Source: Hemiscyllium ocellatum (taxonomy: Eukaryota). Taken from it: a DNA stretch of 64,000 nt. Of this stretch, positions 25,201 to 57,837 are shown piece after piece. Position numbers and translations under genes: made by a program. Each line of letters begins with the position of its first letter. Positions within the stretch are counted from its first letter, which is position 1. The notes under the pieces are model-generated. The model was not told where the DNA came from. It was given only the letters and a program-made list of their open reading frames with translations, and did no database searches. Location: assembly GCF_020745735.1 (NCBI RefSeq), contig NC_083440.1, positions 3,126,517-3,190,516 of the forward strand, read 5' to 3'.

Positions 25201-28200
25201 GGAACACAAAATGGAACTGCTGATAGGCCTTACCGTCGGCCCAGTCCCGGACGATTTTCCGGACCATGGTCGTTTTCCCGCTCCCTGCCGGCCCGCTCAC
25301 CACCACGGTCCCAGACAGGCTGCTCTTCCCGAAGCTGCTCCTGAACAACTGACCGATCCTCACGGTCTCCCACTGGGACTTGATCAGCTTCCGTTGCCCT
25401 TCCTCACGCCTCTTTCCTCTCGCGGTCAGGCTGTGCCCCGCAACGCCCCGTTCGGGACCGGAAACCACGATGACCTGTTCGGTGTAGCACTCCTCCAGAC
25501 AGAACCGCTCCCTCTTCCCACCGACAGTGTCGACCCAGAAGTCCTCACTGGCTCGAAGGAGGAAGCTTTTGTATTGGGTCTGGACATCTTGAAGCGAAAA
25601 TGCAAGTTGTTATAAAGACTGGAATAAGTCAGGAACATAATCAAAAAAGACGAGTTGGACGCTGGCGTTTCTAATTCGGGGACAGAATATCGCCTGGTCT
25701 AGAGGGAGGGTCTAATGAGGAAAGGCCGAGGGACTGGGAGCTGTTCTCCTTAGAGAGGAGGAGGTTGGGAGGTGACTTCACTGGGACGTATAAGATAATC
25801 CGAGGGTTAGATAGGGTGGACAGGGAGAGCCTTTTCCCTCAGGTGGTGATGGCCAACACGAGGGGGTGTAGCTTTAAACCGAGGGGTGATAGATCGAGGG
25901 CAGATGTCAGGTGGAGGTTCTTTACTCAGACAGTAGTGGGGGAGGGGTGGGGGGGGGGGGGGTGGAACGCCCGTCCTGTAACAGGACGAGACTCGCCAAC
26001 TTTAAGGGCCATTGGACAGGCAGATGGAGGAGAATGGGATAGTATAGGTTAGATGGGCTTCGCATTGGGTCAGCACGACATTGAGGGGCCAAAGGGCCTG
26101 GACTGGGCTGGAATGGTCTATGTTCTAGAAGTCCAATGGGATACAGGTTGTTAATGTTTTATTAATAAAATTAGAGCATTTTAAGTCACATAGCGGGGGG
26201 TAATCATGGTGTTAAGAATTAAAGTGCACGCGAGAGACAGATGATAAAATTAGATAATAATATAATCTAGGGATAAAATAAATTTTTAAAAGTTCCAATT
26301 TCTGAACAGGTTTTAAAGGGGATCTTTTAAGATTTTCAATCCATTTCCCTAGTTGGCTTACACCAATCCCTGAGCCTCTCTAAATCTTCAGTGGGCCTCA
26401 GGCGAAGCAGTGTGCATGATTCCTGCCTTCTATCTGGGTTGCTTTGGGGTTGGTGATGTCATTTCCTGTGGTGATGTCATTTCCGGTTCCTTTTCTCAGG
26501 GGGGTGGTAGATGGCGTCTAACTCGATGCGTTTGTTGGCCGAGTTCTGGTTGGAATGCCATGGTTTTAGGAATTCTCGTGCGGGTCTCTGGTTGGCTGGT
26601 CCTGGGATGGATGTGTTGGCCTAGAAACCCTAACCCCTCTCCCCCTACATCAAAGACAGCTCGGAAATGACCAAATTGCCTGACCAATCAGACCCCTTGG
26701 CATCATGGTAGCCCGCAAACCCACCAACACGCTAAAACAGCAGCTAGGGAACGTGAATGACCCTAGACAGACAACAAGCAGAACTAATGTCATTCACAAA
26801 ATACCGTGCAAGGACTGTAACACACACTACATTGGACAAACAGGCAGTAAACTAGCCACAAAAAGACATGACCCTCTCTCACTAGTATCCTCACACTCGC
26901 ATGGGGAAGGACCCCACTTCGACTGGGACAACACATCCATCCCGGGACAAGCCAAACAGCGACACGCGCGAGAATTCCTAGAAGCCTGGCGTTCCAACTG
27001 GAAACTCTCCCAACAAACACATCGAGTTGGACCACCCCCTGAGAAAAGGAGCAGGAAGTGACCTCAGCACAGGAAATGACATCGCCAACCCAAAGAGACC
27101 AACCGAAAGCTGGGCGTCTCAGCTGATGTTGATATTGGGGAATTCAGTGGAAGGAATCCAGTGCAGGTCCAGCTGCCGTGACTTCCTCTGGCTGGGGGCT
27201 GGTCTTCCTCGGTTCTGGTGTGGACCATCAATGTTGGATGTGACTCATCGCCCAAACCCTGGACACTCTCCAGGTCCCGGGCCACGGACTGCTTTGAGTC
27301 ACGAAAGGTGCTGACCGTTGTCTAATCGTCGGCGAGCGTGCCTTTCTGACCCAGGGATGGGCATCGATGAAGCAGCTGAAAGGGGTTGGGCCTAGGAGAC
27401 TACCCTGAGGGAGTCCTGCAAAGATGTCCCTGGGGCTCAGATGGAAGCCGTCGAAAACGTTGCGACTTCCAATTTCATGTTGCTGATCTTGGTTGATGAC
27501 TGAAAGAATTGAACTCATATACAACAGGAAAACAGAAACTCAGCCATCTGTTGATGTTGAGGTGGGTTATCTTAGCCCCAGCTTAATTACCCCAGGATGG
27601 GGACAGCCAATGAGACATGGTGAAGCCAAGACGCTGTGGTATATTGAACTGTGCTCGGTTATTAGGGTCCACCAACTTAAAAAGTCTTAGTTTCCAAATA
27701 AACACCATTGTGGGTGTCAGATGGGAGAGTGAGAATCAGGTCTGAGCGACAGGGAGAGGCTGAACAGGCTGGGGCTGTTTTCCCTGGAGCGTCGGAGGCT
27801 GAGGGGTGACCTTATAGAGGCTTATAAAACCATGAGGGGTATGGATAGGGTAAATAGACAAAGTCTTTTCCCCCTGGGGTGGGGGAGCCCAGAACTAGAG
27901 GGGCATAGGTTTAGGGTGAGAGGGGAAAGGGACCTAAGGGGTAACTTTTTCCCCCAGAGGATGGTACGTGTATGGAATGAGCTGCCAGAGGAAGTGGTGG
28001 GGGCTGGTACAATGACAGCATTTAAAAGGTGGATGGGGACATGAATAGGAAGGGTTTAGAGGGAGATGGGCCAAGTGCTGGCACAGGGGGCTAGATTAGG
28101 TTAGGATATCTGGGACAGCATGGACGGGTTGGGCCGAAGGGCCTGTTTCCGTGCTGTACATCTCTCTGACTCTAAATGGGACTAGATTAGGTTAGGATAT

Positions 28201-31200
28201 CTGGGTCAGCATGGACGGGTTGGGCCGAAGGGCCTGTTTCCGTGCTGTACATCTCTCTGACTCTAAATGGGACTGGATGAGGTTAGGATATCTGGAACCG
28301 CATGGACGGGTTGGGCCGAAGGGCCTGTTTCTGTGCAAAAGTAGGCTACACGTATAGAGTCAGAGTCATGCAGTACGAAAGCAGACCCTTTGGTTAACTC
28401 CATCCCTGCTGACCAGCTTTCCTCATGGAACCCGTCCCTTTAGCCTACACCCACCCTAAACCTGTCCTACCCGTGTGTTCAACCACGCTCTTGAGGGAAC
28501 CGATCGAACGTTTTTGTATGAAACTACACTGGTTTGTTATCTCAGTGAATGACAGCCAAGGCTGGAAGGGCTGAATGGTCTCCTTTGTCTTTGGATCCTA
28601 AACCCTATTCCCCAGAGGCCCCGTCTCCCAGTGTGCTAGTTGCGTCTCGCATTTCAGCCCGCCATTTTCTGATGCTTTTACCTTTGAGGTAGTTGGACAC
28701 TTTGGGTTCCATTAAACTCTGGCTCACTTCCATCCGTAGGCTGGCTCCTATTGAGATAAAGTTCATGGCTTACATCTCTCAATACTTGTGCGTGTAACCA
28801 GAAACCCGTATTCGGTGTCTCGCTGTACCTTTACTCTCAATCTCTTGCAGTATGTTGCTCAGTTTGGGGTTGGTAAGTTTCATCTTGATGAATGTTTCCC
28901 ACATGACTCTCCCTGCCTGAGCTCCACTCTCCATCACCGAATCCAGGAGATGTTCCGTGGCTCGACGATGACTCCCGTCCTTCACTAGGCGTTGGATTTC
29001 CTGGAAAACAGTAGCTCAGTCACACCCTCAGCCTCTCTCTGGGTGTAGGATCGCTCGCTGAGGTGGAAGGTTCGGTTTCAGACGTTTCGTCACCCCACGC
29101 GCGGTAACATCTTCAGTGGGCCTCCGGGTGAAGCACTGTTCATGAGTCCTGCCTTCCATTTATGCGTCACTTCCTGTGACATCACCAACCCAAACACATA
29201 AGTAGAAGGCAGGAATTATCAGCAGTGCTTCACCTGAGGCCCACTGATGATGTAACCGCCCGTGGGGTGACGAAACGTCTGAAACCGAACCTTCCAGCTC
29301 AGCGAGCAAACCTACATTCAGAACCTCAACCTGAGCTACAAATCTTCTCAAAACTCTCTCTCGGTGATATCGTTAAGGGCAAAAAGACTCCTGTAATTAT
29401 CAAGTCTGTACATATTTCCCTGTGGATCAATTGAAAGGGAGCCACCGTTAGGAGAAATTGTTGCAAAAATTAAATAGATAAATTGTCCCTGATTTTTTGA
29501 TAAGCACCTATAAGTTAAATCAGACTTTCTCAGATTTGTGACGTTATTCTGTGCAATGTCATGGTATCATTTATGAAAGAGCTAGGATGGATTAGTTCTA
29601 CCTTTAGGCAACATGAGATCTGTTCAAATCTCCGTTTGTAAATTGAATTGGTTAGTCAGTGTCCACATGGAATGAGCTGCCAGAGGAAGTGGTGGGGGCT
29701 GGTACAATGACAGCATTTAAAAGGTGGATGGGGGACATGAATAGGAAGGGTTTAGAGGGAGATGGGCCAAGTGCTGGAAACATGGGGCTAGATTAGGTTA
29801 GGATATCTGGGTCAGCATGGACGGGTTGGGCCGAAGGGTCTGTTTCTGTGCTGTACATCTCTCTGACTCTAAACGGGAGTAGATTGGGTTAGGATATCTG
29901 GGACAGCATGGACAGGTTGGGCCGAAGGGCCTGTTTCGGTGCTGTACGTCTCTCTGCCTCTAAATGGGACTAGATTAGGTTAGGATATCTGGGACAGCAT
30001 GGACGGGTTGGGCCGAAGGGCCTGTTTCCGTGCTGTACATCTCTCTGGTTGAGGTGATTCAACCCCGTCTTGTCAAGCCCATTAAGGATGGGCACTGAGG
30101 CAGCCGGAACGAGGGGGGAAATAAATATTTTTGTTATAATTCTGTTTGGAGACGAATGCAGACAATCGCAAACCTCTCCCATTATTGTAGCAATGGTCCG
30201 GAGTGATTTCTTTATCCCCATTTTGACCGCAATGTTATTGACAGGAGCTGCCGATGACCAGGGGGGAGGGTGGGATGTTTAATCCCTGACCCCGAGGTGT
30301 TGAGGGCTCTGCCTGACTGTAACAAGAAGGGGGGAGATGTGAAGGTGGGGAGGTGTCTGTGATCTGCCTCCGGCTCATCGAGAGCGCGGTGACGGAGCTG
30401 TGTTCCCTCTCTCACAGAGTCTGTCCTCAGCTCCCCCGCGACTGGAGGGGTTTCAGAAATTCAGAGATTGTTCAGTTCCAGTTAACGGCGCTAACGTGCT
30501 GACCAGCGTCCGGGAGCCAGGGGGGGGGGGTCTGTTCCAACACCGACAGTGCCTGAGGAAAGGTCGGATATCAGAGGGGGAACACGCCTCATCATCGTTC
30601 GCCCGCTCTGCTCCCTCCTGCCTTCCCAAACCAACACTGGGACCGTTCTCTGGTCAAAATCCCGTCCTGAGCATTCGAAACAGCACGCGTGTGATTAACA
30701 GATAGCCCTCATTTCTTAAGAGGACAGTGAGACTTCAGACAAAAGGGAAATAAAATTGCCAGGTCGAGGAAACAAAGCTGTTGCGTTCAAAAGGTTGGGT
30801 GGGGTGGGTGATCAGCAGAACATGAGATTGAACAACTGAGCCTACCCTGTAGAGATCTTCATGTGACTTTATCTTGTGCAGTATCATCAGGGAGACAGCT
30901 TCGATATACTCCTCAATTGCCTCTTCGATCCTCTGTCGGTAAAATTCAGTCACTCTGCGGAGAGTGATGTCAGTATAACCCCTCAAGGTCTGTCTGATAG
31001 CAGCACTGGGATCTGGAAAAACATAATTAAAAACAGGCATCAAAAAAACGCAGCGGGCCAGGCTGTGTCCGTGGGGAAGGGGGAACATCTCGAGTCCACT
31101 GTGAGTCTTCTTCAGAGCTGAAGAGAGAAGCAGGGGGGGCTGCAGCGTTCGTCACTGGAGAGAAAGGAGAGGAGCAGGAGGATAAAATTGGTGACTTGTC

Positions 31201-34200
31201 AACAGTACGACATTGGCTGGGAAAGGGTCTGCGATGCGATGACAGCTATTTTAGAAAGAGGGGACCGTCCTCTCGTTCGTGAAGTCAAACATGAATAGGC
31301 AGAATTAAACCCGAAATCAGAACCGGGAATCGTTGTGACCGCAGACTCCCGACAGAGTGGAAACAGGCAAAACAAATACGCAGCCACCCAGACCCATTCC
31401 CCCACCCTATTACTCTGCATTTCCACCTGACCTATCCACCCTAACCTGCACATCCCTGGGCACTATGGGACAATTTCCCATGGCCAATCCCACCCTAACC
31501 TGCACATCCCTGGGCACTATGGGACAATTTCCCATGGCCAATCCACCCTAACCTGCACATCCCTGGGCACTATGGGACAATTTCCCATGGCCAATCCACC
31601 CTAACCTGCACATCCCTGGGCACTATGGGACAATTTCCCATGGCCAATCCACCCTAACCTGCACATCCCTGGGCACTATGGGACAATTTCCCATGGCCAA
31701 TCCACCCTAACCTGCACATCCTGGGCACTATGGGACAATTTCCCATGGCCAATCCACTCTAACCTGCACATCCTGGGCACTATGGGACAATTTCCCATGG
31801 CCAATCCACCCTAACCTGCACATCCTGGGCACTATGGGACAATTTCCCATGGCCAATCCACCCTAACCTCCACATCCCTGAGCACTATGGGACAATTTCC
31901 CATGGCCAATCCACCCTAACCTGTACATCCCTGGGCACTATGGGACAATTTCCCATGGCCAATCCACCCTAACCTCCACATCCCTGGGACACTATGGGAC
32001 AATTTCCCATGGCCAATCTACCCTAACCTGCACATCCCTGGGCACAATGGGACAATTTCCCATGGCCAATCCACCCTAACCTGTACATCCCTGGGCACTA
32101 TGGGACAATTTCCCATGGCCAATCTACCCTAACCTGCACATCCCTGGGCACAATGGGACAATTTCCCATGGCCAATCTACCCTAACCTGCACATCCCTGG
32201 GCACAATGGGACAATTTCCCATGGCCAATCCACCATAACCTGCACATCCCTGGGACACTATGGGACAATTTCCATGGCCAATTCACGCTAACCTGCACAT
32301 CCCTGGGCACTATGGGACAATTTCCCATGGCCAATCCACCTAAACTTGCACATCTCTGGGACACTATGGGACAATTTCCCATGGCCAATCCACCATAACG
32401 TACACATCCCTGGGCACTATGGGACAAATTCCCAAGGCCAATCCACCATAACGTACACATCACTGGGCACTATGGGACAATTTCCCAATCCCAATCCACC
32501 CAAACCTGCACATCCCTGGGCACTATGGGACAATTTCCCAATCCCAATCCACCCAAACCTGCACATCCCTGGGCACTATGGGACAATTTCCCATGGCCAA
32601 TCCACCCTAACCTGCACATCCCTGGGCACTATGGGACAATTTCCCAATCCCAATCCACCCAAACCTGCACATCCCTGGGCACTATGGGACAATTTCCCAT
32701 GGCCAATCCACCATAACCTGCACATCCCTGGGCACTATGGGACAATTTCCCATGGCCAATCCACCCTAACCTGCACATCCCTGGGCACTGTGGGCCAATT
32801 TCCCATGGCCAATCCACCATAACATGCACATCCCTGGGCACTATGGGACAATTTCCCATGGCCAATCCACCCTAACCTGCACATCCCTGGGCACTATGGG
32901 ACAATTTCCCATGGACAATCCCACCCTAACCTGCACATCCCTGGGCACTATGGGACAATTTCCCATGGCCAATCCCACCCTAACCTGCACATCCCTGGGC
33001 ACTATGGGACAATTCCCCATGGCCAATCCACCCTAACCTGCACATCCCTGGGCACTATGGGACAATTTCCCATGGCCAATCCCACCCTAACCTGCACATC
33101 CCTGGGCACTATGGGACAATTTCTCATGGCCAATCCACACTGACCTGCACATCCCTGGGCACTATGGGACAATATCCCATGGCCAATCCACCCTAACCTG
33201 CACATCCCTGGGCACTATGGGACAATTTCCCATGGCCAATCCACCCTAACCTGCACATCCCTGGGCACAATGGGACAATTTCCCATGGCCAATCCACCCT
33301 AACCTACACATCCCTGGGCACTATGGGACAATTTCCCATGGCCAATCCCACCCTAACCTGCACATCCCTGGGCACTATGGGACAATTTCCCATGGCCAAT
33401 CCCACCCTAACCTACACATCCCTCGGCACTATGGGACAATTGCCCATGGCCAATCCACACTAACCTGCACATCCCTGGACACTATGGGACAATTTCCCAT
33501 GGCCAATCCACCCTAACCTGCACATCCCTGGACACTATGAGACAATTTCCCATGGCCAATCCACCCTAACCTGCACATCCCTGGGCACTATGGGACAATT
33601 TCCCATGGCCAATCCACCCTAACCTGCACATCCCTGGGCACTATGGCATAATTTCCCATGGCCAATCCCACCCTAACCTGCACATCCCTGGGCACTATGG
33701 GACAATTTCCCATGGCCAACCCACCCTAACCTGCACATCCCTGGGCACTATGGGACAATTTCCCATGGCCAATCCACCCTAACCTGCACATCCCTGGGCA
33801 CTATGGGACAATTTCCCATGGCCAATCCCACCCTAACCTGCACATCCCTGGACACTATGGGACAATTTCCCATGGCCAATCCACCCTAACCTGCACATCC
33901 CTGGGCACTATGGGACAATTTCCCATGGCCAATCCACCTTAACCTGCACATCCCTGGGCACAATGGGACAATTTCCCATGGCCAATCCACCCTAACCTGC
34001 ACATGTTTGGACTGTGGGAGGAAACTGGAGCTAACCCACACAGATCAGGAGGGGGGCGGAGAATGCTCAAATTCCACACAGACCGTCTCCCCTGAGGGTG
34101 GGATCGAACCCAGGTCCCTGGTGCTGGGAGGCAGCAGTGGTTCCCACTGAGGCACCGTGCCACCCTGTGTTCTGCTGGAAGGTGACAGTGGATGCAGGTT

Positions 34201-35611
34201 GTATATATATATAATATTAGATTAGATTACTTACAGTGTGGAAACAGGCCCTTCGGCCCAACAAGTCCACACCGAACCGCCGAAGCGCAACCCACCCATA
34301 ACCCTACGTTTACCCCTTTACCTAACACTACGGGCAATTTAGCATGGCCAATTCACCTGACCCGCACATCTTTGGGTTGTGGGAGGAAACCGGAGCACCC
34401 GGAGGAAACCCACGCAGACACGGGGAGAACATGCAAACTCCACACAGACAGTCGCCTGAGTCGGGAATTGAACCCAGGTCCCTGGCGCTGGGAGGCAGCA
34501 GTGCTAACCACTGTGCCACCGTGCCACCCACCAAGCAGCTTTGAAAAGTGTGAACGGGAGAGCCCGGGCAGATACCTGTGTCCGGCTGATCCAACGCCTC
34601 GGCCATGTCAGAGGTGAACGTCCACTTTGCTTTTTTCACCGGCGTTGTTTCCTGTCCGAATGTCGGCTGCGGCTCATTGGCTGTTCGGAATTTGGAACCT
34701 ATCTGCCTATCCACGTCCTTTCCCGTCTGTCCCAGATTCCTATCCGTGTCTTCGGAACCTAGTTCCATATTGTCAGACGAGTCCGACCTGGTGGGAGTGG
34801 CCTGGCTTTGTTTGCTGGGGGCCTGGTGCTCATCGATGGTGATGGAGCCAGGGTCCCGATAACTGAGACGGCTGGCTCCGTTACCTCCCGCGACGCTCTC
34901 CATCCTTTCCCCCCTCCACTGACTGAAGTCGCCGCCTTTATCCCACGGGAGGGCGGGGGCCTCTCTCTCGCTCCCGGCAGCTGAACCACGCCAACGTCCG
35001 GCACCCCCGAAGATCCAGCCTCTCCCCGGCTTGCCCACCCTGCCAGGCTCGGGTCCGGGCCGCGTTCGGTCGGCGCCACCCATGCCAGCCTCTTCCTTCC
35101 TCCCCCAGCCCAACGTCCAGAGGGAGCGTCTCGCCGGGCCCTCCTGTCCTTGCTCCTCTGCCCCGCGGGCTGCAGGAGGGCCGGGGTCCTGGCTGGGCAT
35201 CCGGTTCCAGGGAGGGGCGAGGTTCCGAGGGAACGCATCCCAAAGCCGGGGGAGACTGGGGAAGGTGAAGGTGAAGCCCTTCGACTTGCCACTGGCTGCC
35301 CGGTCCACATCTGTCTGCTCTGCGCGCGCTGAGCTGGAATACAAGGTCCCGGCCAGGGGATCCAGTTCCACGCTCGGTGTGCCCGCGGCCGGTGCCACCC
35401 TCCCGCTGGTCTGGGCTGCACCGCCAGACGAGGGAGGCCACACCGTCGGGTCAAACACCGTCCCGAACCCCGGGGCTGTCCCGTGAGCCGACGTACCCTC
35501 CCCCGACTCTGAGGCGCTGCTGTCTGTTTGGGGAAACGCAGCGGGGACGCTGCTCCTGCCTCTCGTTTTCCTGGTGGGTTTGTCACCTCGGGAACGGCGC
35601 CGGCTGAACAT
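10087..35611 (-). CDS. Multi-exon NLR immune receptor: N-terminal extension + CARD + NACHT + RI-type LRRs (shark NLRC3/NLRP3-like family), about 1312 aa
   Basis: Exons 35611-34576, 31012-30846, 29000-28829, 28747-28682, 25587-23841, 20808-20722, 20610-20440, 20344-20174, 15642-15475, 10240-10087. All are GT-AG with matching phases (1,0,1,1,2,2,2,2,2). Total 3939 nt is divisible by 3. Confidence 0.88.
11188..11596. other. Assembly gap
   Basis: N run. Confidence 0.99.
11628..11771. mobile_element. Degraded palindromic PLE-terminus element (same family as 6694-6852)
   Basis: TGCTGGAAAAGC.../...GCTTTTCCAGCA arms. Hammerhead cores are decayed. Confidence 0.7.
11853..12770 (-). mobile_element. 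CR1 subfamily A 3' fragment with repeated tail, nested in the older CR1
   Basis: ORF 12157-12516 is nearly identical to the other subfamily A copies. Confidence 0.92.
13945..14252 (-). mobile_element. Intact, unexpanded tRNA-derived V-domain SINE (HE1-like)
   Basis: A/B-box-like head (GGTTCAATTCC), V-domain GTGTGGAGTTTGCAC...TTTCCTCCCACAGTCCAAAG, and CR1-like tail. It splits the YLDFSK motif of the host CR1, with a short ATTTT duplication. Confidence 0.9.
15475..15642 (-). CDS. NLR LRR exon, 168 nt (LEGNGI...LTEVNLSGNLLTD...LQTIG)
   Basis: CAG acceptor, GTAAG donor, phase 2-2, LxxLxLxxNxL repeats. Confidence 0.9.
16165..16878 (+). mobile_element. CR1 LINE 3' fragment (subfamily C)
   Basis: ORF 16069-16809 from DLGV to IKGYG, plus the 3' UTR. 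Confidence 0.93.
17070..17490 (+). mobile_element. CR1 subfamily A 3' fragment
   Basis: [21 protein letters not shown] plus the shared diagnostic indels. Confidence 0.9.
17626..17803. mobile_element. Degraded palindromic PLE-terminus element with perfect outer inverted repeats of about 26 bp
   Basis: AGGTGAGAGAGCGTGGCGCTGGAAGA ... TCTTCCAGCGCCACGCTCTCTCACCT. The inner hammerhead-like parts are mutated. Confidence 0.7.
17970..18647 (+). mobile_element. V-domain SINE with about 8 internal 53-bp tandem units
   Basis: B-box-like GGTTCAATC, V-domain, array at about 18110-18527, (AATCT)3 tail. Confidence 0.9.
18775..20100 (-). mobile_element. CR1 LINE RT/3' fragment, frameshifted
   Basis: [35 protein letters not shown] and WQMEFN. 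Confidence 0.92.
20174..20344 (-). CDS. NLR LRR exon, 171 nt
   Basis: SLTSLNLNKNKLGDRGIRLV; CAG/GTAAG; phase 2-2. Confidence 0.92.
20440..20610 (-). CDS. NLR LRR exon, 171 nt
   Basis: LSSNGI...SLTQLNLSRNKLGDTGMTDLCEALSSPQCKIQSL; CAG/GTAAG. Confidence 0.93.
20722..20808 (-). CDS. NLR LRR exon, 87 nt
   Basis: LRGNNLTDDGVNLLSETLKREDCKIQQL; TAG/GTGAGT. Confidence 0.92.
20890..20985 (+). mobile_element. Solo PLE terminus with an intact hammerhead motif (20890-20921)
   Basis: CC-CTGATGA-A-GGGC TTTT GCCC-GAAA-CGTC-GG, followed by GATGCTGCCTGAACTGCTGTGCTCTTCCAGC. Confidence 0.8.
21485..22605 (+). mobile_element. V-domain SINE with about 16 internal 53-bp units
   Basis: V-domain at about 21510-21600, array at about 21600-22470, CR1-like tail. 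Confidence 0.9.
23130..23832 (+). mobile_element. CR1 LINE 3' fragment ending about 10 nt from the NACHT exon donor
   Basis: [28 protein letters not shown] 3' UTR, (CTATTGT)n tail. Confidence 0.92.
23841..25587 (-). CDS. NLR NACHT exon (1747 nt): FISNA-like region, NACHT, HD1/WHD/HD2, first LRR
   Basis: Walker A GPAGSGKTT, Walker B LLFILDSLEEF, sensor-1 LLTTRP, WHD FVHVTLQEFMAA, FLRFTAGLSS. AAG acceptor at 25590-25588; AG|GTACGT donor. Confidence 0.96.
25700..26130 (+). mobile_element. Degraded CR1 3' fragment
   Basis: YKIIRGLDRVDRESLFP...TRG...FFTQ, plus tail. Confidence 0.8.
26385..27105 (+). mobile_element. Penelope-like element fragment (GIY-YIG endonuclease) with an inverted copy of its 3' part at 26385-26622
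   Basis: NVIHKIPCKDCNTHYIGQTG...FDWDNT...AREFLEAW. 26385-26622 is the reverse complement of about 26930-27100 plus the terminus. Confidence 0.88.
27130..27480 (-). mobile_element. Old LINE RT remnant
   Basis: AGLPQGSLLGPTPFSCFID motif. Confidence 0.65.
27740..28336 (+). mobile_element. CR1 subfamily A 3' fragment with triple tail
   Basis: Same diagnostic sequence as 2510-3297. Confidence 0.92.
28682..28747 (-). CDS. NLR CARD-NACHT linker exon, 66 nt (GASLRMEVSQSLMEPKVSNYLK)
   Basis: TAG acceptor, G|GTAAAA donor, phase 1-1, open frame. Confidence 0.82.
28829..29000 (-). CDS. NLR CARD exon 2 (EIQRLVKDGSHRRATEHLLDSVMESGAQAGRVMWETFIKM...LQEIESK)
   Basis: TTTTCCAG acceptor, G|GTACAG donor. CARD-like LLDxVxxxG motif. 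Confidence 0.9.
29053..29355. mobile_element. Palindromic Poseidon-type PLE-terminus element with two hammerhead motifs (same family as 7198-7515)
   Basis: Inverted arms at 29053-29308. Cores at 29079-29118 (-) and 29242-29281 (+). Confidence 0.85.
29666..30047 (+). mobile_element. CR1 subfamily A terminal fragment with triple tail
   Basis: TGGAATGAGCTGCC...AAAAGGTGGATGGGG plus 3 tails. Confidence 0.9.
30846..31012 (-). CDS. NLR CARD exon 1 (DPSAAIRQTLRGYTDITLRRVTEFYRQRIEEAIEEYIEAVSLMIL...)
   Basis: TTTTCCAG acceptor, AGG|GTAGG donor. The T.FYR.R.E.AIE motif is one I recognise from shark NLR N-terminal CARDs. Confidence 0.88.
31343..34165 (-). mobile_element. V-domain SINE with about 48 internal 53-bp units (array at about 31435-34003)
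   Basis: Head at 34005-34165 with A-box-like GTGGCACGGTG and B-box GGTTCGATCCC. Tail at about 31343-31435. Confidence 0.92.
34217..34529 (-). mobile_element. Intact, unexpanded V-domain SINE
   Basis: Near-identical to 13945-14252. (AATCT)n tail. Confidence 0.92.
34576..35611 (-). CDS. NLR first coding exon: 345 aa low-complexity region ending ...DMAEALDQPDT
   Basis: Donor CAG|GTATC at 34575 is in phase with the CARD exon. ATG 35611 is in GCCAACATG context after an in-frame TAA (35650-35648). Strong acceptor TTTGTCCTTTTCTTTCTGTGTAG at 35998. Alternative start at ATG 34606. Confidence 0.62.
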
Positions 35612-36035
35612 GTTGGCGTGGAGGCGCCGAACGCATCGGCGTTCGGATTATTGACAGGGCCCACCGTCTGTTCCGCGTTCACTCTCCTCTCGTTGTCGGT
35701 CACACATGATTCAGCGCACGACAAACTCCCGGACGGGCCCCCTCAGAGTCGGCAGCCCTGGAAGGGGTGGGGCCACCCTGACTCAGATTTCCTTCGAACC
35801 CAGGGTTTGACCGGGCAATACGTCTTTTCTCTTCCCCCAAATGGATGCTGCGGCGCAGAAACGAAGACGAGGAAATATTTTACTGCAGGATCTCAGGCTT
35901 TCGTGATGATATCGTGCGATCGGTTCATCTGTGTCTTCCTGGTGACCAGAACATGATTCCAAAATGTTGGACCCGAACCCAGCAGGTCCAGGACCGTCTA
36001 CACAGAAAGAAAAGGACAAAACTATTAGTCAAACA

Positions 36036-36180
36036 CTCAGAGAGATGTACAGCACGGAAACAGACCCTTCGGCCCAACCCATCCATGCTGTCCCAGATAT
36101 CCTAACCTAATCTAGTCCCATTTAGAGTCAGAGAGACGAACAGCACGGAAACAGGCCCTTCGGCCCAACCCGTCCATGAT
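36036..36180 (-). mobile_element. CR1 subfamily A tail, two copies
   Basis: CAGCACGGAAACAG(A/G)CCCTTCGGCCCAACCC appears twice. Confidence 0.85.
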
Positions 36181-38885
36181 GTCCCCCCGATACTCCCTGC
36201 CTTGCTGTGTCCTTCCTGCCTGTCCCCCTGACACTCCCTGCCTTGCTGTGTCCCACCTGCCTGTCCCCCCTGACACTTCCTGCCTTGCTGTGTCCTTCCT
36301 GCCTGTTCCCCCGACACTCCCTGCCTTGCTGTGTCCCTCCTGCCTGTCCCCCCCTGACACTCCCTGCCTGCTGTGTCCTTCCTGCCTGTCCCCCTGACAC
36401 TCCCTGCCTTGCTGTGTCCCTCCTGCCTGTCCCCCCCTGACACTCCCTGCCTTGCTGTGTCCCTCCTTCCTGTCCCCCTGACACTCCCTGCCTTGCTGTG
36501 TCCCTCCTGCCTGACCCCCCTGACACTCCCTGCCTTGCTCTGTCCCTCCTGCCTGTCCCCCCCTGACACTCCCTGCCTTGCTCTGTCCCTCCTGCCTGTC
36601 CCCCCTGACACTCCCTGCCTTGCTGTGTCCCTCCTGCCTGTCCCCCCCTGACACTCCCTGCCTTGCTGTGTCCCTCCTGCCTGTCCCCCCTGACACTCCC
36701 TGCCTTGCTGTGTACCTCCTGCCTGTCCCCCCCCCGACACTCCCTGCCTTGCTGTGTCCTTCCTGCCTGTTCCCCCGACACTCCCTGCCTTGCTGTGTCC
36801 TTCCTGCCTGTCCCCCCTGACACTCCCTGCCTTGCTGTGTCCCTCCTTCCTGTCCCCCTGACACTCCCTGCCTTGCTGTGTCCCTCCTGCCTGTCCCCCG
36901 ACACTCCCTGCCTTGCTGTGTACCTCCTGCTGTCCCCCCCTGACACTCCCTGCCTTGCTGTGTACCTCCTGCTGTCCCCCCCTGACACTCCCTGCCTTGC
37001 TGTGTCCCTCCTGCCTGTCCCCCTGACACTCCCTGCCTTGCTGTGTCCCTCCTGCCTGTCCCCCCCTGACACTCCCTGCCTTGCTGTGTCCCTCCTGCCT
37101 GTCCCCCCCTGACACTCCCTGCCTTGCTGTGTCCTTCCTGCCTGTCCCCCCTGACACTCCCTGCCTTGCTGTGTACCTCCTGCCTGTCCCCTTTGACACT
37201 CCCTGCCTTGCTGTGTACCTCCTGCCTGTCCCCCTGACACTCCCTGCCTTGCTGTGTCCCACCTGCCTGTCCCCCTGACACTCCCTGCCTTGCTGTGTAC
37301 CTCCTGCCTGTCCCCCTGACAATTCCCTGCCTTGCTGTCTCCCTCCTGCCTGTCCCCCCCGACACTCCCTGCCTTGCTGTGTCCCTCCTGCCTGTTCCCC
37401 CCTGACACTTCCTGCCTTGCTGTGTCCCTCCTGCCTGTCCCCCCTGACACTCCCTGCCTTGCTGTGTCCCTCCTGCCTGTCCCCCCCTGACACTCCCTGC
37501 CTTGCTGTGTCCCTCCTGCCTGTCCCCCCTGACACTCCCTGTCTTGCTGTGTCCTTCCTGCCTGTCCCCCTGACACTCCCTGCCTTGCTGTGTCCTTCCT
37601 GCCTGTCCCCCGACACTCCCTGCCTTGCTGTGTCCCTCCTGCCTGTCCCCCGACACTCCCTGCCTTGCTGTGTCCCTCCTGCCTGTCCCCCCTGACACTC
37701 CCTGCCTTGCTGTGTCCCACCTGCCTGTCCCCCCTGACACTCCCTGCCTTGCTGTGTCCTTCCTGCCTGTCCCCCCCTGACACTCCCTGCCTTGCTGTGT
37801 CCCTCCTGCCTGTCCCCCTGACACTCCCTGCCTTGCTGTGTCCCTCCTGCCTGTCCCCCCTGACACTCCCTGCCTTGCTGTGTCCCACCTGCCTGTTCCC
37901 CCTGACACTCCCTGCCTTGCTGTGTCCCTCCTGCCCGTCCCCCCCGACACTCCCTGCCTTGCTGTGTCCCTCCTGCCTGTCCCCCCTGACACTCCCTGCC
38001 TTGCTGTGTCCCACCTGCCTGTTCCCCCTGACACTCCCTGCCTTGCTGTGTCCCTCCTGCCTGTCCCCCCCGACACTCCCTGCCTTGCTGTGTCCCTCCT
38101 TCCTGTCCCCCCTGACACTCCCTGCCTTGCTGTGTACCTCCTGCCTGTCCCCTTTGACACTCCCTGCCTTGCTGTGTACCTCCTGCTGTCCCCCCGACAC
38201 TCCCTGCCTTGCTGTGTCCCTCCTTCCTGTCCCCCCTGACACTCCCTGCCTTGCTGTGTCCCTCCTTCCTGTCCCCCTGACACTCCCTGCCTTGCTGTGT
38301 ACCTCCTGTCTGTCCGCCCTGACACTCCCTGCCTTGCTGTGTACCTCCTGCTGTCCCCCCTGACACTCCCTGCCTTGCTGTGTACCTCCTGCTGTCCCCC
38401 CCTGACACTCCCTGCCTTGCTGTGTCCCTCCTGCCTGTCCCCCCTGACACTCCCTGCCTTGCTGTGTCCCTCCTGCCTGTCCCCCTGACACTCCCTGCCT
38501 TGCTGTGTCCCTCCTGCCTGTCCCCCCTGACACTCCCTGCCTTGCTGTGTACCTCCTGCTGTCCCCCCTGACACTCCCTGCCTTGCTGTGTACCTCCTGC
38601 TGTCCCCCCGACACTCCCTGCCTTGCTGTGTCCCTCCTTCCTGTCCCCCCTGACACTCCCTGCCTTGCTGTGTCCCTCCTTCCTGTCCCCCTGACACTCC
38701 CTGCCTTGCTGTGTACCTCCTGCTGTCCCCCCTGACCCTCCCTGCCTTGCTGTGTCCCTCCTTCCTGTCCCCCTGACACTCCCTGCCTTGCTGTGTACCT
38801 GCTGCCTGTCCCCCCTGACCCTCCCTGCCTTGCTGTGTACCTCCTGCTGTCCCCCCTGACCCTCCCTGCCATGCTCTGTCCCTGC
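36181..38885. repeat. C-rich minisatellite of about 42 bp (CTGACACTCCCTGCCTTGCTGTGTCCCTCCTGCCTGTCCCCC), more than 60 copies
   Basis: Direct periodicity of 41-44 nt with a variable C-run. Confidence 0.96.
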
Positions 38886-39242
38886 TGCCCACCACGTGTA
38901 GCTGTTATTTTCCCCCTGCCCAGGGGGTGGGTGGTGTCACTGACCGTGAGGTGCTGAAACTCTGTCAGCTCTGAGCCCTGGGGTCGGAAACGCGGCGTTA
39001 TCTCAGCAGGCAGTCTCTGTGTGTGTGTGTGTGTGTGTGGGAGTCGAGCCGTCCCCTCCAGCAACAACGACTGGTCAGAGTCCGTCCTGTAGCTGTTGGG
39101 ACTTCCTCCTGGAGAGTTACAGAAAAACTTTGCGTCAGTCTGCCCCCTTCTATCCAGCGCTCTGCAGAGTTTAACCCCCTTCCCTAATATCAGTCCTAAT
39201 TCCCTCCCTCCCCAGTTTACTCTCCTGACTCTCTCTCTTTTT

Positions 39243-43395: not shown

Positions 43396-44289
43396 ATGCG
43401 TTGTGTTGGTGGGTTGGAGGTGGCTCAGTGGTTAGCACCGCGCTCTCCCAGCACCAGGGTCCCGGGCTCGATCCCACCGTCAGGGGAGGGGGGTGGGGGC
43501 GACTGTCCTTGTGGAGTTTGCACATTCTCCCATGTGTCTGCGTGGGTTTGCTCCGGTTTCCTCCCACACTCCAAACATGTGCAGGTTAGGGTGGGATTGG
43601 CCATGGGGAATTGGCCCATAGTGTCCCGGGGTGAGGGTGGATTGGCCATGGGGAAGTGTCCCATAGTGCCCTGGGGTTGGGGTGGATTGGCCATGGGGAA
43701 GTGTCCCATAGTGCCCCGGGGTTGGGGAGGATTGGCCATGGGGAAGTGTCCCATAGTGCCCCGGGGTTAGGGTGAATACCATGGGGAAGTGTCCCATAGT
43801 GCCCCAGGGTTGGGGTGGATTGGCCATGGGGATGTGTCCCATAGTGCCCCAGGGTTGGGGTGGATTGGCCATGGGGAAGTGTCCCATAGTGCCCTGGGGT
43901 TGGGGAGGATTGGCCATGGGGAAGTGTCCCATAGTGCCCTGGGGTTGGGGAGGATTGGCCATGGGGAAGTGTCCCATAGTGCCCCAGGGTTGGGGTGGAT
44001 TGGCCATGGGGAAGTGTCCCATAGTGCCCTGGGGTTGGGGAGGATTGGCCATGGGGAAGTGTCCCATAGTGCCCTGGGGTTGGGGAGGATTGGCCATGGG
44101 GAAGTGTCCCATAGTGCCCTGGGGTTGGGGTGGATTGGCCATGGGGAAGTGTCCCATAGTGCCCTGGGGTTGGGGTGGATTGGCCATGGGGAAGTGTAAA
44201 AAATGAGGTCTGCAGATGCTGGAGATCACAGCTGCAAATGTGTTGCTGGTCAAAGCACAGCAGGTTAGGCAGCATCTCAGGAATAGAGA

Positions 44290-44325
44290 ATTCGACGTTT
44301 CGAGCATAAGCCCTTCATCAGGAAT
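44290..44325 (-). ncRNA. Minimal hammerhead ribozyme motif
   Basis: ATTC-CTGATGA-A-GGGC TTAT GCTC-GAAA-CGTC-GAAT, with perfect stem I pairing. Confidence 0.78.
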
Positions 44326-44762
44326 AAGAGAGAGAGAGCCAAGCAGGCTAAGATAAAAGGTAGGGAGGAGGGACTAGGGGGAGGGGAGATGACCTGGGGG
44401 GTGCAGTGAGAGAGGGACTCACTGAAATCCTTGTAGAGGGAGGAAGAGAGCTTCTTCAAGGAAGGCATCCTTGTAAGAGGATTCGCAGTAGGTTAAAATC
44501 TTCGAGTAAAAAATGAGGTCTGCAGATGCTGCAGACCTCATTTTTTACTCGAATCCAGCATCTGCAGACCTCATTTTTTACTCGAAGATTTTAACCGACT
44601 GCGAATCCTCTTACAAGGATGCCTTCCTTGAAGAAGCTCTCTTCCTCCCTCTACAAGGATTTCAGTGAGTCCCTCTCTCACTGCACCCCCCCAGGTCATC
44701 TCCCCTCCCCCTAGTCCCTCCTCCCTACCTTTTATCTTAGCCTGCTTGGCTCTCTCTCTCTT

Positions 44763-44798
44763 ATTCCTGATGAAGGGTTTATGCTCGAAACGTCGAGT
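44763..44798 (+). ncRNA. Minimal hammerhead ribozyme motif
   Basis: ATTC-CTGATGA-A-GGGT TTAT GCTC-GAAA-CGTC-GAGT. Differences from its twin are G-U compatible. Confidence 0.72.
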
Positions 44799-45239
44799 TC
44801 TCTATTCCTGAGATGCTGCCTAACCTGCTGTGCTTTGACCAGCAACACATTTGCAGCATGGGGAAGTGTCCCATAGTGCCCTGGGGTTAGGGTGGATTGG
44901 CCATGGGGAAGTGTCCCATAGTGCCCTGGGGTTGGGGTGGATTGGCCATGGGGAAGTGCCCCATAGTGCCCTGGGGTTGGGGTGGATTGGCCATGGGGAA
45001 GTGTCCCATAGTGCCCCAGGGTTAGGGTGGATTGGCCATGGGGAAGTGTCCCATAGTGCCCTGGGGTTGGGGTGGATTGGCCATGGGGAAGTGTCCCATA
45101 GTGCCCTGGGGTTGGGGTGGATTGGCCATGGGGAAGTGTCCCATAGTGCCCCGGGGTTAGGGTGGATTGGCCATGGGGAAGTGTCCCATAGTGCCCCGGG
45201 GTTAGGGTGGATTGGCCATGGGGAAGTGCCCCATAGTCA

Positions 45240-45700
45240 CTGGGGGCGGTGTCGGGATTCGAACCCCTTCCCCCGCGGGGAGGGGGCGTGGCCAGCGCCG
45301 GCCCCGCGGTGCCCGCGATCAGAGCCTGCGCCACTGCTCGCGCATGCGCGGCGCCTGCGCGGACGCCGCTGTTGAAGCTGCGGGTGCCGGCGGGCGGACG
45401 GAGACATGGCGCCGCGGCCCGGGATCCCCGTCCTCCTCCTCCTCCTCCTGCTCCTGCTCCGGGGCAGCGGGGCCCAGCCGCACCCGGCCTCCGCCGCCAA
45501 CGTCTTCCGGCAGGCGGCCGCCGCCCTCAGGGGGATGCTGCCGGAGCCCGTCCGGGAGGTGACCGACACCGCCCACTCCTCGGGGGTCTGGGGCCGGGAG
45601 GAACAGGAAAGGCCGAGGCTTCAGGGCGGGAGCTAGGCCCGAGCTCGGGGGGGGCGGGGCCAGGGCCAGCAATGGGCGGGGCGCCTCCTGATTGGCTGAT
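45240..45700 (+). promoter_or_regulatory. CpG-island promoter of the TMEM109-like gene
   Basis: Dense CpG, GC box GGGGGCGTGGC at 45282-45292, NRF1 palindrome GCGCATGCGC at 45340-45349. Confidence 0.8.
45406..45558 (+). CDS. TMEM109: TMEM109-like exon 1 (signal peptide)
   Basis: GACATGG Kozak, poly-Leu signal peptide, GAG|GTGACC donor. Confidence 0.82.
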
Positions 45701-48700
45701 TGTGTCTGTTTAACATATATGCAAATTAGGATTAGCATATTATTTATAATGTTTATGATAGTATTAATGATTATATTATTTATATATCACACATCACTGC
45801 ATCAGGGTTAAATGTTTATTGTTATATATAATATACAATTATATAGTGTACGTATATATATAATATGTAAATATTATGTTATGGATGAGTATTATATAAT
45901 GTTTATAATGTACACATTATACATCTATACATTACACTGTTATATATCATATATTTATACATTTATATATATACCCCCCTCACAGTCTGTCACTCCCCCC
46001 CCCCACAGTCTGTCACTCCCCCCCCACACAGTCTGTCACTCCCCCCCCCCCCACACAGTCTGTCACTCCCCCCCCTCACAGTCTGTCACTCCCCCCCCTC
46101 ACAGTCTGTCACTCCCCCCCCCCCACACAGTCTGTCACTCCCCCCCCTCACAGTCTGTCACTCCCCCCCTCCCTCACAGTCTGTCACTCCCCCCCCCCCA
46201 CAGTCTGTCACTCCCCCCCCTCACAGTCTGTCACTCCCCCCCCTCACAGTCTGTCACTCCCCCCCTCCCTCACAGTCTGTCACTCCCCCCCCACACAGTC
46301 TGTCACTCCCCCCCCCCACACAGTCTGTCACTCCCCCCCCTCACAGTCTGTCACTCCCCCCCTCACAGTCTGTCACTCCCCCCCTCCCTCACAGTCTGTC
46401 ACTCCCCCCCCCACAGTCTGTCATTCCCCCCCCTCACAGTCTGTCACTCCCCCCCTCCCTCACAGTCTGTCACTCCCCCCCCTCACAGTCTGTCACTCCC
46501 CCCCCTCACAGTCTGTCACTCCCCCCCCTTCACAGTCTGTCACTCCCCCCCTCACAGTCTGTCACTCCCCCCCCCACACAGTCTGTCACTCCCCCCCTCA
46601 CAGTCTGTCACTCCCCCCCCACACAGTCTGTCACTCCCCCCCCTCACAGTCTGTCACTCCCCCCCTCACAGTCTGTCACTCCCCCCCCTCACAGTCTGTC
46701 ACTCCCCCCCCACAGGCTGTCACTCCCCCCCCCACACAGTCTGTCACTCCCCCCCCACACAGTTTGTCACTCCCCCCCCACACAGTCTGTCACTCCCCCC
46801 CCACACAGTCTGTCACTCCCCCCCCTCACAGTCTGTCACTCCCCCCCCTCACAGTCTGTCACTCCCCCCCCTCACAGTCTGTCACTCCCCCCCCCTTCAC
46901 AGTCTGTCACTCCCCCCCTCACAGTCTGTCACTCCCCCCCCTCACAGTCTGTCACTCCCCCCCCTCACAGTCTGTCACTCCCCCCCCTCACAGTCTGTCA
47001 CTCCCCCCCTTCACAGTCTGTCACTCCCCCCCCCAACAGTCTGTCATTCCCCCCCCTTCACAGTCTGTCACTCCCCCCCCCAACAGTCTGTCACTCCCCC
47101 CCCTCACAGTCTGTCACTCCCCCCCCTCACAGTCTGTCACTCCCCCCCTCACAGTCTGTCACTCCCTCCCCCTCACAGTCTTTCCCCTTCCCACCCAACC
47201 CCCACTTCACAGTCTGTCACCTTCTCCCCACCCCCTCGTGGTCAGTCGGGTTCTGCCCCCTCCCCCGCCCTCTGTAATGAATCCTGTCTCCCCTTCACAT
47301 TCGGAACGCAGCCTCTGTCTGTCCGTCCCTCATTCCCCTCCCCCCCCCCTCCTCCGCTGCGACCCTTGCTCCTCCTCTGCTGGTCTCGGCAGCCCCCTCG
47401 GCTTCCTGTCCTTGTCTTGGGACCCCCCTCTGCGCGTGTGTAACGTGACGCCCCTCCCTGCCCTCTCTTATTGTTTTCCCTTTCTGCCCCTAGACCCTGC
47501 TGCAGTACTGGCAAGTCGCGATGGACAGCGCCAAGGTCATGGTCAGTGGGCTGGCTGAGTTGTGCTCGGATTTGCTGGATGCTTTGGGGATTAAAGGTTA
47601 GTGACCCTCACTAGCACCAGGGGGTGGGGGAGTGGAGGGGGGGGGGAATTGGGGAGGTGGGGTACGGGCAGTGTGAGGGACATTCTCTTCAGCAGGCCCC
47701 CACCGGGAGTGAGATTGAGACGGGGGGACATCTCCGCACAGAGACAACTTAAGCTTCAGGCTGATCGTTCAAGGAGGGAGGGTGAGATTGAGGAAGGGGT
47801 GGGATGGTGTCTCAGTGGTTGGCACCGCTGCCCTCCAGTGCCAGGTTCGGTCCCACCCTTGGTGAGAGGGAGGGGCGGCTGTCTGTGTGGAGTTTGCACA
47901 TTCTCCCCGTGTCTGCGCAGGGTTTCCTCCCACAATCCAAACATGTCCAGGTTATGGTGGGTTTGGCCATGGGAAATGGTCCCATAGTGCCCAGGGATGT
48001 GCAGGTTAGGGTGGATTGGCCATGGGAAATTGTCCCATAGTGCCCAGGGATGTGTAGGTTAGGGTGGATTGGCCATGGGAAATTGTCCCATAGTGTCCCA
48101 GGGATGTGTAGGTTAGGGTGGGATTGGCCATGGGAAATTGTCCCATAGTGCCCAGGGATGTGCAGGTTAGGGTGGATTGGCCATGGGAAATTGTCCCATA
48201 GTGCCCAGGGATGTGCAGGTTAGGGTGGATTGGCCATGGGAAATTGTCCCATAGTGCCCAGGGATGTGTAGGTTAGGGTGGGATTGGCCATGGGAAATTG
48301 TCCCATAGTGCCCAGGGATGTGCAGGTTAGGGTGGGATTGGCCATGGGAAATTGTCCCATAGTGCCCAGGGATGTGCAGGTTAGGGTGGGATTGGCCATG
48401 GGAAATTGTCCCATAGTGCCCAGGGATGTGCAGGTTAGGGTGGGATTGGCCATGGGAAATTGTCCCATAGTGCCCAGGGATGTCCAGGTTAGGGTGGGAT
48501 TAGTCCGGAGTGATCAGTTTGGGGAATAGCTCTGGGTGGGTTATTCTGCTGAGGGTCAGAGTGGCAGGTCAGAACCGCGGCGATGCTGACCCCCGGGGTG
48601 GCCAAGATCTGGCCGAGCGGGAGAGAAGGTTCGAGGGGGCAGAATGGCGCACGTCTGGAGCGTTCCTCCCTCCCACCCTTCCACGGTCACTCTCTGTGCC

Positions 48701-53566: not shown

Positions 53567-54061
53567 CAAGGGGGCGGCCCAGGCAGACGAAACCTTCACC
53601 AAACCTCACCCCCTCCCTTCCCTCCCCAACGAAGGGGGAGCCATAAACACTGGGAAAAGCCTTCTCCCGATAACTCTCAGGCGTCACTCCGGTTCCAGGT
53701 CACCCGTGGCGAACGTTGCTTTAACATCCTTTAATCGGGCCCACTTCAGGACCATTCGCAAGAATGCCAAATTTCAGATGCTGACAGCCACGGAGAGAGA
53801 ACGGTGCTGATTGGCTGGCAAGTTAGCATCGACTTGGACGAAATGTCGAACTCTAAGTAAACCTGTTGCCTTACGTTTACCGTCTTATCTACCCCTCCCC
53901 AACCCCCCCCATCCCCAATCACTGCTGACAGAGTAGCAGTGCAAACACAACTCACAATGAGTCCCCCCTGTTTGTCGCCTGTTGGACACCCCCCTCCCAT
54001 TGTCCCTCGTTTCTGAAACTGTTCTTTCTCATTTTTAGACCAATGTTTGAAATTACTGACG

Positions 54062-54067
54062 AATAAA
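54062..54067 (+). terminator. Polyadenylation signal of the TMEM109-like gene
   Basis: AATAAA about 500 nt after the stop, followed by a GT/T-rich element. Confidence 0.7.
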
Positions 54068-54179
54068 ATGGTCCTGTCTTTGTATGTCTCCGCCTCCGCC
54101 TCCGGTCAAAGGTCAAATGTCAAAGAGGCACCTCATCGCCATGTCGGACAGAGCGAAACGTGAGGCTGACATCACTGAT

Positions 54180-57726: not shown

Positions 57727-57837
57727 CTGAAGAAACATCACACCAGAGGTGAGGGTTCTGCTCCGTTTCTCTCCCCCAGCCTGCAGCCAGGCTTGGTATC
57801 AACACACATTAGTCTCAGAACAAGACATTCAGCACCC

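Follow-up and report, generated by a model that had tools for sequence, protein, structure and literature searches.

The 64,000-nucleotide stretch of Hemiscyllium ocellatum DNA analysed here (the window; RefSeq assembly GCF_020745735.1, contig NC_083440.1, positions 3,126,517 to 3,190,516, numbered below from its first letter) carries on its minus strand the gene of a NACHT-LRR receptor (NLR), whose first coding exon (34576-35997) specifies a predicted disordered tail of 335 residues in front of a CARD-fold domain. On the evidence of comparison across sharks, we consider this N-terminal extension to be genuine coding sequence. The explanation that we hold to be probable as a whole combines an exon with its leader, a CARD fold, a disordered and motif-bearing tail under selection, and a docking role proposed for that tail. 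The gene corresponds to the RefSeq models XP_060709481-83 of Hemiscyllium ocellatum, in which the extension is already modelled as coding by automatic prediction; XP_060709483.1, of 1256 aa, is named 'NACHT, LRR and PYD domains-containing protein 3-like isoform X2', and it was retrieved by searching with the NACHT exon and subsequently with the N-terminal part of an orthologue. The protein is therefore already in RefSeq as an automatic prediction, and what is new is the presence, conserved across sharks, of a long motif-bearing disordered tail before a cryptic CARD. A literature search found no paper describing the tail.

The exon, like all the gene features described below, lies on the minus strand, and it is at least the second exon of the gene. 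It is preceded by an AG acceptor at 35999-35998 with a long polypyrimidine tract, the exon beginning at 35997, and it is followed by the donor ACAG/GT, which makes 34576 its last base; the junction with the next exon is in phase (ACA G/AT CCC at 31012). It consists of a 386-nt leader, 345 codons and one base. The in-phase frame is open for 357 codons, of which 345 follow the first ATG (35609-35611), a putative main start codon located 12 codons past an in-frame stop, with A at -3 and T at +4. The disordered extension proper comprises the 335 codons from 35611 to 34607, before Met336 (MAEALDQPDT) at 34606, and is characterised by the AlphaFold prediction, the indels relative to Stegostoma, the omega values and the lack of a Pfam match. 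The first 345 residues of XP_060709483.1 map to 35611-34577 at 100% identity. A first-pass annotation, made from the letters of the window, had described these coordinates, the frame, the Met at 34606, the acceptor at 35998 and a second frame open for 321 codons, and all of them were recovered as described; the acceptor is real, being also present, with its polypyrimidine tract, in the zebra shark (Stegostoma).

The local DNA has 64-70% GC, with a CpG island over 34400-36000 (observed/expected 0.65-0.97), and a second frame of the same exon is also open for 321-327 codons. In first-order Markov shuffles, an open reading frame (ORF) of at least 345 codons arose in ~1% of trials, and in 0.03% a pair of frames each reached at least 320 codons. 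From the shuffles alone the open frame is more than simple chance, and it is the cross-species data that decide. Ten shark species (Hemiscyllium, two Chiloscyllium, Rhincodon, Stegostoma, Scyliorhinus, Mustelus, Carcharodon, Heterodontus, and Pristiophorus with two genes), which cover both Galeomorphii and Squalomorphii, contribute eleven gene models with homologous, collinear and in-frame N-terminal extensions, from 75 to ~590 aa in length. With the Carcharodon tail alone as query, the Mustelus tail was recovered at 50% identity (E = 3e-107) and that of Heterodontus at 45% (E = 4e-59), and this query matched no protein other than orthologues of this NLR. The tail in the window also gives a collinear alignment with the S. 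canicula tail (E = 4e-10).

Since gene models favour long ORFs, the DNA of an orthologue was examined, and this genomic comparison rests on one locus, that of Stegostoma tigrinum. The Stegostoma exon has 48% GC and no CpG island; its homologous frame runs for 375 codons without a stop, and stops occur throughout the remaining two frames, where the longest open run is 69 codons. An unguided DNA alignment of the Hemiscyllium and Stegostoma exons shows 57% identity, and all ten of its gaps are multiples of three. The Nei-Gojobori omega for this pair is 0.47-0.50 in the coding frame versus 0.98 and 0.91 in the off-frames, and mismatches amount to 0.50 at third positions versus 0.39 at first and second positions. 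The corresponding values are 0.44 for the first CARD exon and 0.20 for the NACHT exon. Within the tail, pN/pS lies between 0.42 and 0.79 in every 50-codon sliding window, a range obtained from one species pair that is blind to site-specific positive selection. These figures argue for moderate purifying selection on the extension. The frame is thus kept in the orthologue, with an omega of ~0.5 and neither stops nor frameshifts. The caveat raised in the first-pass annotation, that GC-rich DNA gives long ORFs by chance, is lifted because the Stegostoma exon, at 48% GC, is nevertheless open in the coding frame only; on the same comparison, the second open frame of Hemiscyllium is a by-product of GC richness. 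The alternative, in which the ORF is a non-coding product of chance within a leader that is GC-rich and a CpG island, the protein beginning only at Met 34606, can appeal to the base composition and CpG island of the exon, to its second long frame and to the lack of Pfam or protein-library matches for the tail. It is contradicted by the Stegostoma exon, by the indels in multiples of three, by a purifying selection limited to the coding frame, and by the lack of conservation of Met336 and the eight AUGs that come before it. We regard it as highly improbable and, in our view, as already refuted by the comparative data.

A start of the form MF(S/N/R/P)... is aligned in seven of the nine models that reach this part of the protein. 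The counterpart of Met336 is not Met in 9 of the 10 other models, being Leu, Phe, Trp or another residue; it is Leu in the close relative Chiloscyllium punctatum, and Met only in S. canicula. Between 35611 and 34606 there are eight AUGs. Four of these are in the main frame and four are not, and the context is strong for two of the eight, at 35083 and 34903. The RefSeq isoforms all retain the long N-terminus, isoform X1 differing only after residue 1207, and the four isoforms of Chiloscyllium punctatum share one common N-terminus. It had been suggested at first that leaky scanning gives long and short isoforms; a short isoform of this origin seems unlikely, given the non-conservation of Met336 and the eight AUGs ahead of it, and the known isoforms, all of them long, do not bear the suggestion out.

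The 5' leader segment (35612-35997) contains four upstream ATGs, and ~330 nt of its 386 nt can be aligned in blocks with the Stegostoma leader. It includes an upstream ORF (uORF) of 11 codons at 35893-35928 (MNRSHDIITKA, then a stop), which has an equal length and stop in Stegostoma (MNLSHDIITSA, then a stop; locus positions 2662-2697), the two differing by three synonymous and two replacement changes. The conservation of this uORF suggests translational control of the main NLR frame, and it may be a conserved-peptide uORF. With regard to transcription, two small sequencing runs from the same individual as the assembly, X1 (150 M letters) and X2 (253 M), contain 1.00 and 0.64, respectively, of the sampled words of the exon 34576-35997, and only 0.09-0.10 of the words of the intron stretch 29050-30800. 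The latter share is at the level of runs from other species and probably reflects repeat words. By reasoning from these word shares, the pattern fits cDNA that holds the whole exon, leader included, to about 35997. Runs X3-X6 were also considered as RNA and set aside: the larger runs X5 and X6 contain 0.80 of the intron words as well, which makes them DNA-like and uninformative on expression.

Downstream of the tail, the putative effector domain is encoded by two exons, the first at 30846-31012, joined in phase to the tail exon, and the second at 28829-29000, placed by peptide mapping of XP_060709483.1. A small linker exon begins at 28747, and a 1.75-kb exon (23840-25594) encodes a linker, the NACHT domain, the winged helix, HD2 and the first LRR. 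The LRR exons mapped so far, by exact peptide mapping of the same protein, are at 20804-20727, 20609-20532, 20525-20442, 20340-20191 and 10233-10090. Pfam recognises NACHT in the 1.75-kb exon (E = 3.5e-36) and in the full protein (2e-35), together with NLRC4_HD2 (6.9e-12) and NOD2_WH (1.6e-06), and the LRRs of XP_060709483.1 are C-terminal (LRR_6, E = 6.8e-22); by these profile matches the protein is an NLR.

The nature of the effector domain was assigned from its predicted structure. Pfam gave no match to CARD and none to PYD in S. canicula residues 1-360, in residues 1-330 of the Pristiophorus gene P0001 or in full-length XP_060709483.1, and no FIIND in full-length XP_060709483.1 or in the Mustelus orthologue. 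The AlphaFold model of residues 346-459 has a pLDDT of 93, and its exhaustive comparison with VIA-align matched more than 30 solved CARDs at Z 8-11.4, including those of SP100, NLRC4, ARC, NOD1, ASC, caspase-1, MAVS and Apaf-1. The top 30 matches (Z 8.4-11.4, rmsd 1.7-3.7 Å, 80-100 residues aligned) are nearly all solved CARDs, the exceptions being one de novo designed protein and one Fas/FADD death domain. The PYD and DED folds match less well, with Z of at most 7.1 (the best PYD being AIM2, Z 7.0), as do death domains, with Z of at most 8.5 (Fas/FADD). In Foldseek the high-probability rows are likewise CARDs, with a target-normalised TM of 0.74-0.82, and no match reached E <= 0.001. On the modelled fold, the effector domain is a CARD, and RefSeq errs in giving the protein a name that points to a PYD. 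The receptor architecture first proposed for this gene, CARD-NACHT-LRR without FIIND, is upheld, the CARD by fold only and the NACHT and LRRs by Pfam.

The tail that precedes this CARD had also been thought to be disordered, and structure prediction agrees: in an AlphaFold model built from an 11-sequence alignment, residues 1-333 have a pLDDT of 46 and lack secondary structure, a helix is predicted at residues 334-340, and pLDDT falls below 50 for 295 of the 372 residues modelled. No Pfam match was found in the tail, and six tails searched against Pfam gave only sub-threshold noise from CBM_20 and Edc3_linker. A HMMER search with the 345-aa tail against 1.8 billion proteins returned 0 matches, the tail being too divergent, and the ESM Atlas gave no usable match. 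Conservation is concentrated in short islands, separated by variable and indel-rich spacers. The predicted disorder, the islands lying between variable spacers and the range of lengths (75-590 aa) together describe a disordered region with short linear motifs.

Five islands emerged from an automatic conservation scan, and two further motif clusters have conserved aromatic anchors. The N-terminus is a polybasic segment (residues 1-21, 35549-35611) in which F2 is conserved in 7/7 sequences. Motif 1, a basic stretch with FxFxF...W (residues 109-124, 35240-35287), has F115 and F117 partly conserved. Motif 2, (F/W)T(L/F)GWGRK(K/E) (residues 164-173, 35093-35122), is by alignment the strongest conserved island, since position 165 (W165) is aromatic in 7/7 sequences and W169 is identical in all seven. 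It is followed by motif 3, FG..GGW(H/R)G (residues 196-213, 34973-35026), where F201 is conserved in 7/8 sequences and W207 in 5/8, and which aligns with S. canicula residues 7-24. Motif 4, KGG.FSQ...(E/D)M (residues 224-238, 34898-34942), retains F229 in 7/7, and motif 5, (F/L)SYR(D/E)xG (residues 251-257, 34841-34861), retains Y251 in 5/7. In motif 6, (S/L)DNMEL (residues 277-287, 34751-34783), M282 and E283 are nearly invariant, as are P324, K326, K329 and F332 in motif 7, TPVKKAK..F followed by the short helix (residues 322-343, 34583-34648). The non-conserved Met336 (34606-34604) lies inside motif 7, in this helix just before the CARD. Nine of the 25 aromatic residues of the tail serve as conserved anchors, namely F2, F115, W165, W169, F201, W207, F229, Y251 and F332, and the remainder are lineage-specific; a KKAK cluster also anchors the conserved motifs. 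Of the aromatic motifs noticed in the first-pass annotation, all five are present, and in each of them one or more of the aromatics are conserved among other sharks.

The Gly/Pro/Arg-rich appearance of the tail is also present as first noted, but it is peculiar to the hemiscylliid lineage, where it accompanies a GC shift, and is not a property of the module. The Gly/Ala/Arg/Pro (GARP) fraction is 0.42-0.44 in hemiscylliids versus 0.26-0.31 in the whale, zebra, white and Mustelus sharks, and is 0.40 in the Pristiophorus gene P0067. The GC content of the tail is 65% in Hemiscyllium versus 48% in Stegostoma (GC at the three codon positions 0.61/0.63/0.71 versus 0.48/0.50/0.46), third-position GC in the NACHT exon is 0.70 versus 0.51, and the CpG island covers the exon in Hemiscyllium only. 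Relative to Stegostoma, the shift spans the locus from 23840 to 35997 and has altered the amino-acid make-up of the tail (GARP 0.42 versus 0.27); it looks like the result of GC-biased gene conversion.

We tentatively propose that the tail gates the CARD by serving as a platform for docking and regulation, the docking function itself being something that we only infer, as our best guess. Its short linear motifs would bind defined host partners, and by partner binding and by its basic clusters the tail would determine the timing and the site of signalling by the adjacent CARD. These clusters are the polybasic stretch at the N-terminus and the PVKKAK beside the CARD, which resembles a nuclear localisation signal, and they suggest a control of localisation. 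We favour this reading because islands of specific sequence amid a composition that drifts are the hallmark of short linear motifs, and the motif islands, together with a pN/pS below 1 throughout, fit a tail used for docking or regulation better than they fit a decoy that evolves fast. Several points weigh against the explanation as a whole. On the functional side, the tail matched no known motif class or family in Pfam, the HMMER protein library or the ESM Atlas, and its aromatic positions, taken together, are not better conserved than the others (0.39 versus 0.36). The dN/dS estimates come from a single species pair with dS near saturation (~1.1-1.2), with an uncertain alignment in the spacers, and every orthologue protein is a computational gene model. 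In addition, the RNA nature of runs X1 and X2 is a program's guess joined to what the exon and intron word shares imply.

Other functions can be envisaged for the tail, and the docking, targeting, masking and tripwire readings are not mutually exclusive. The basic-aromatic clusters could bind anionic lipids or phase-separate, so that the receptor is concentrated at a membrane or in a condensate. The polybasic regions of NLRP3 and NLRP6 act in this way, and clusters of K/R with F/W are present in the N-terminal polybasic stretch, KSKGFTF, WGRKK and KKAKWTF, within a Gly/Ser/Pro-rich disordered chain that contains 7% aromatic and 13% basic residues. Nevertheless, it is the sequence of the motifs and not the composition that is conserved: GARP ranges from 0.26 to 0.44 among species, most aromatics are not conserved, and neither a lipidation site nor an amphipathic helix is predicted. 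We find targeting rather unlikely. It is also conceivable, though doubtful, that the tail folds back on the CARD or NACHT as an autoinhibitory mask and is freed on activation, given that the most conserved island (residues 322-343) adjoins the CARD and that a short helix is packed before the CARD in the AlphaFold model. Against such masking, AlphaFold predicts no intramolecular contact beyond that helix, paralogues work with leaders of 15-30 aa, and 335 residues exceed the needs of a mask.

A further alternative, which we judge to be improbable, is that the tail is a tripwire or an integrated decoy, which a stress kinase, or a protease or effector from a pathogen, would cut or modify to cause activation. 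The disordered N-termini of NLRP1 and CARD8 are protease tripwires, and the NLRP1 linker is modified by a stress kinase. The shark sensor, which signals through a CARD, likewise exposes a long stretch of disorder at its N-terminus; the length of the tail is very plastic (75 to 590 aa, with tandem modules in Mustelus), and a (V/I)xxD-like site, in a pattern read by eye, follows the DNMEL island in orectolobiform sharks and Heterodontus. In such a sensing module, with an equally small probability, the motifs would act as substrates or as mimics of a host target, and their cutting or modification would unmask the adjacent CARD. If true, this would be a second, independent tripwire route among vertebrate NLRs, invented in sharks and operating without FIIND. 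However, the islands have been kept over deep shark divergences, which is more easily reconciled with a host partner than with an arms race, and with pN/pS below 1 in all windows there is no sign of positive selection in this single, low-power pair. Moreover, degradation from the N-terminus as in NLRP1 cannot free a C-terminal CARD fragment here, as FIIND is lacking and the CARD stands before NACHT; a degradable tripwire of the NLRP1/CARD8 type is probably not what the tail represents.

NLR effector domains normally lie at or near the N-terminus. NLRP1 and CARD8 share with the shark protein a long disordered N-terminal region on a CARD-signalling innate sensor, but the shark receptor lacks FIIND, has its CARD N-terminal to NACHT instead of C-terminal, ends in LRRs, and bears conserved motif islands in a tail with pN/pS below 1. 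NOD1, NOD2 and NLRC4 have the same CARD-NACHT-LRR order, and the shark CARD model superposes on the CARDs of NLRC4 and NOD1 with Z of 10.3-10.7; those proteins, however, begin essentially at a CARD that Pfam recognises, whereas in the shark protein 335 disordered residues come first and Pfam is silent. CIITA is an NLR whose acidic, Pro/Ser/Thr-rich disordered N-terminus recruits partners and which has basic nuclear-localisation motifs. The shark tail resembles it in being a long disordered N-terminus with basic motifs, without sequence similarity, and the main CIITA isoforms have no CARD; for the shark receptor, the KKAK and polybasic patterns give no more than a hint of a nuclear function. 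NLRP3 and NLRP6 are recruited to membranes or condensates through a polybasic linker and a polybasic disordered region, respectively, and these NLRs likewise have basic clusters in a flexible segment. Their segments are short and lie between PYD and NACHT, in contrast to a shark tail of 335 aa that precedes the effector domain and has conserved aromatic motifs.

Chondrichthyan 'NLRP3-like' paralogues of Heptranchias, Scyliorhinus torazame and Callorhinchus also possess a cryptic CARD, a linker, NACHT (43-47% identity) and LRRs. The leaders before the CARD are only 15-30 aa in paralogues from Heptranchias, Scyliorhinus torazame, Hypanus and Callorhinchus, and ~110 aa in one Leucoraja skate model. 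Because paralogues with the same CARD have short leaders, the long motif-bearing tail, of 120-590 aa, is a derived addition confined to the orthogroup of this gene. An NLRP-related family is expanded in the whale shark (Tan et al, 2021; PMC8455134), and the chondrichthyan 'NLRP3-like' NLRs are probably that family. The same Pfam-invisible CARD fold, and not a PYD, was also seen in chondrichthyan NLRs named 'NLRP3/12-like', and on these models automatic NLRP naming is misleading for the whole chondrichthyan group. A family filed in databases as "NLRP3/6-like (PYD)" has a CARD fold missed by sequence profiles, which affects what is inferred about inflammasome-like signalling in sharks.

The split between galeomorph and squalomorph sharks took place hundreds of millions of years ago. 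One shark orthogroup has kept the tail since before that split, while many paralogues do without it, and the retained tail is accordingly a candidate regulatory or sensing device. The case also holds a lesson for the scanning of genomes, in that a suspicious GC-rich, Gly/Arg/Pro-rich look was here a lineage-specific compositional drift over a real coding region.

Some resemblances of the tail to other motif classes were examined and set aside. An FG-nucleoporin character, considered from FSFG/FTFG in some orthologues, was rejected, as there are only 1-5 FG dipeptides per tail of 116-590 aa and no match to Pfam Nucleoporin_FG. An Ago-hook of the GW182 type was rejected as well, with 0-3 GW/WG per tail and only W169, and partly W207, conserved. 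No RHIM or amyloid-type motif was seen by eye in the tail. Endocytic NPF/DPF motifs occur near the FSYRD island in some orthologues, with SRL instead in Hemiscyllium.

Gene structure varies among the orthologues. In Mustelus asterias, residues ~90-400 hold the motif-1 module in about four tandem copies, of the form ...SNPGK..PG.VDK...SFTFRGLTQ..SNFSQLGS.DTSQAFH.EVKQT, which brings the tail to ~590 aa. Pristiophorus japonicus has two genes of this orthogroup: P0001 has a tail of ~75 aa with a 20-aa tandem duplication before the CARD, and P0067 has a tail of ~490 aa, in which the conserved start Met has become Ile and the model starts further upstream. The S. canicula orthologue is split over two adjacent RefSeq genes (553 aa and 544 aa) with the break inside the NACHT region, probably an artefact of annotation or assembly.

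Within the window, positions 34392-34459, in the intron right after the tail exon, belong to a tRNA-derived SINE. Large GC-rich minisatellites depleted in CpG (observed/expected 0.03-0.12) occupy 36102-38900, 1-2000, 31435-34003, 43500-45300, 45800-47500, 54000-55900 and 57750-59250; in several frames they give rise to spurious ORFs 400-1000 codons long, and one of these minisatellites starts ~100 nt upstream of the acceptor of the exon.

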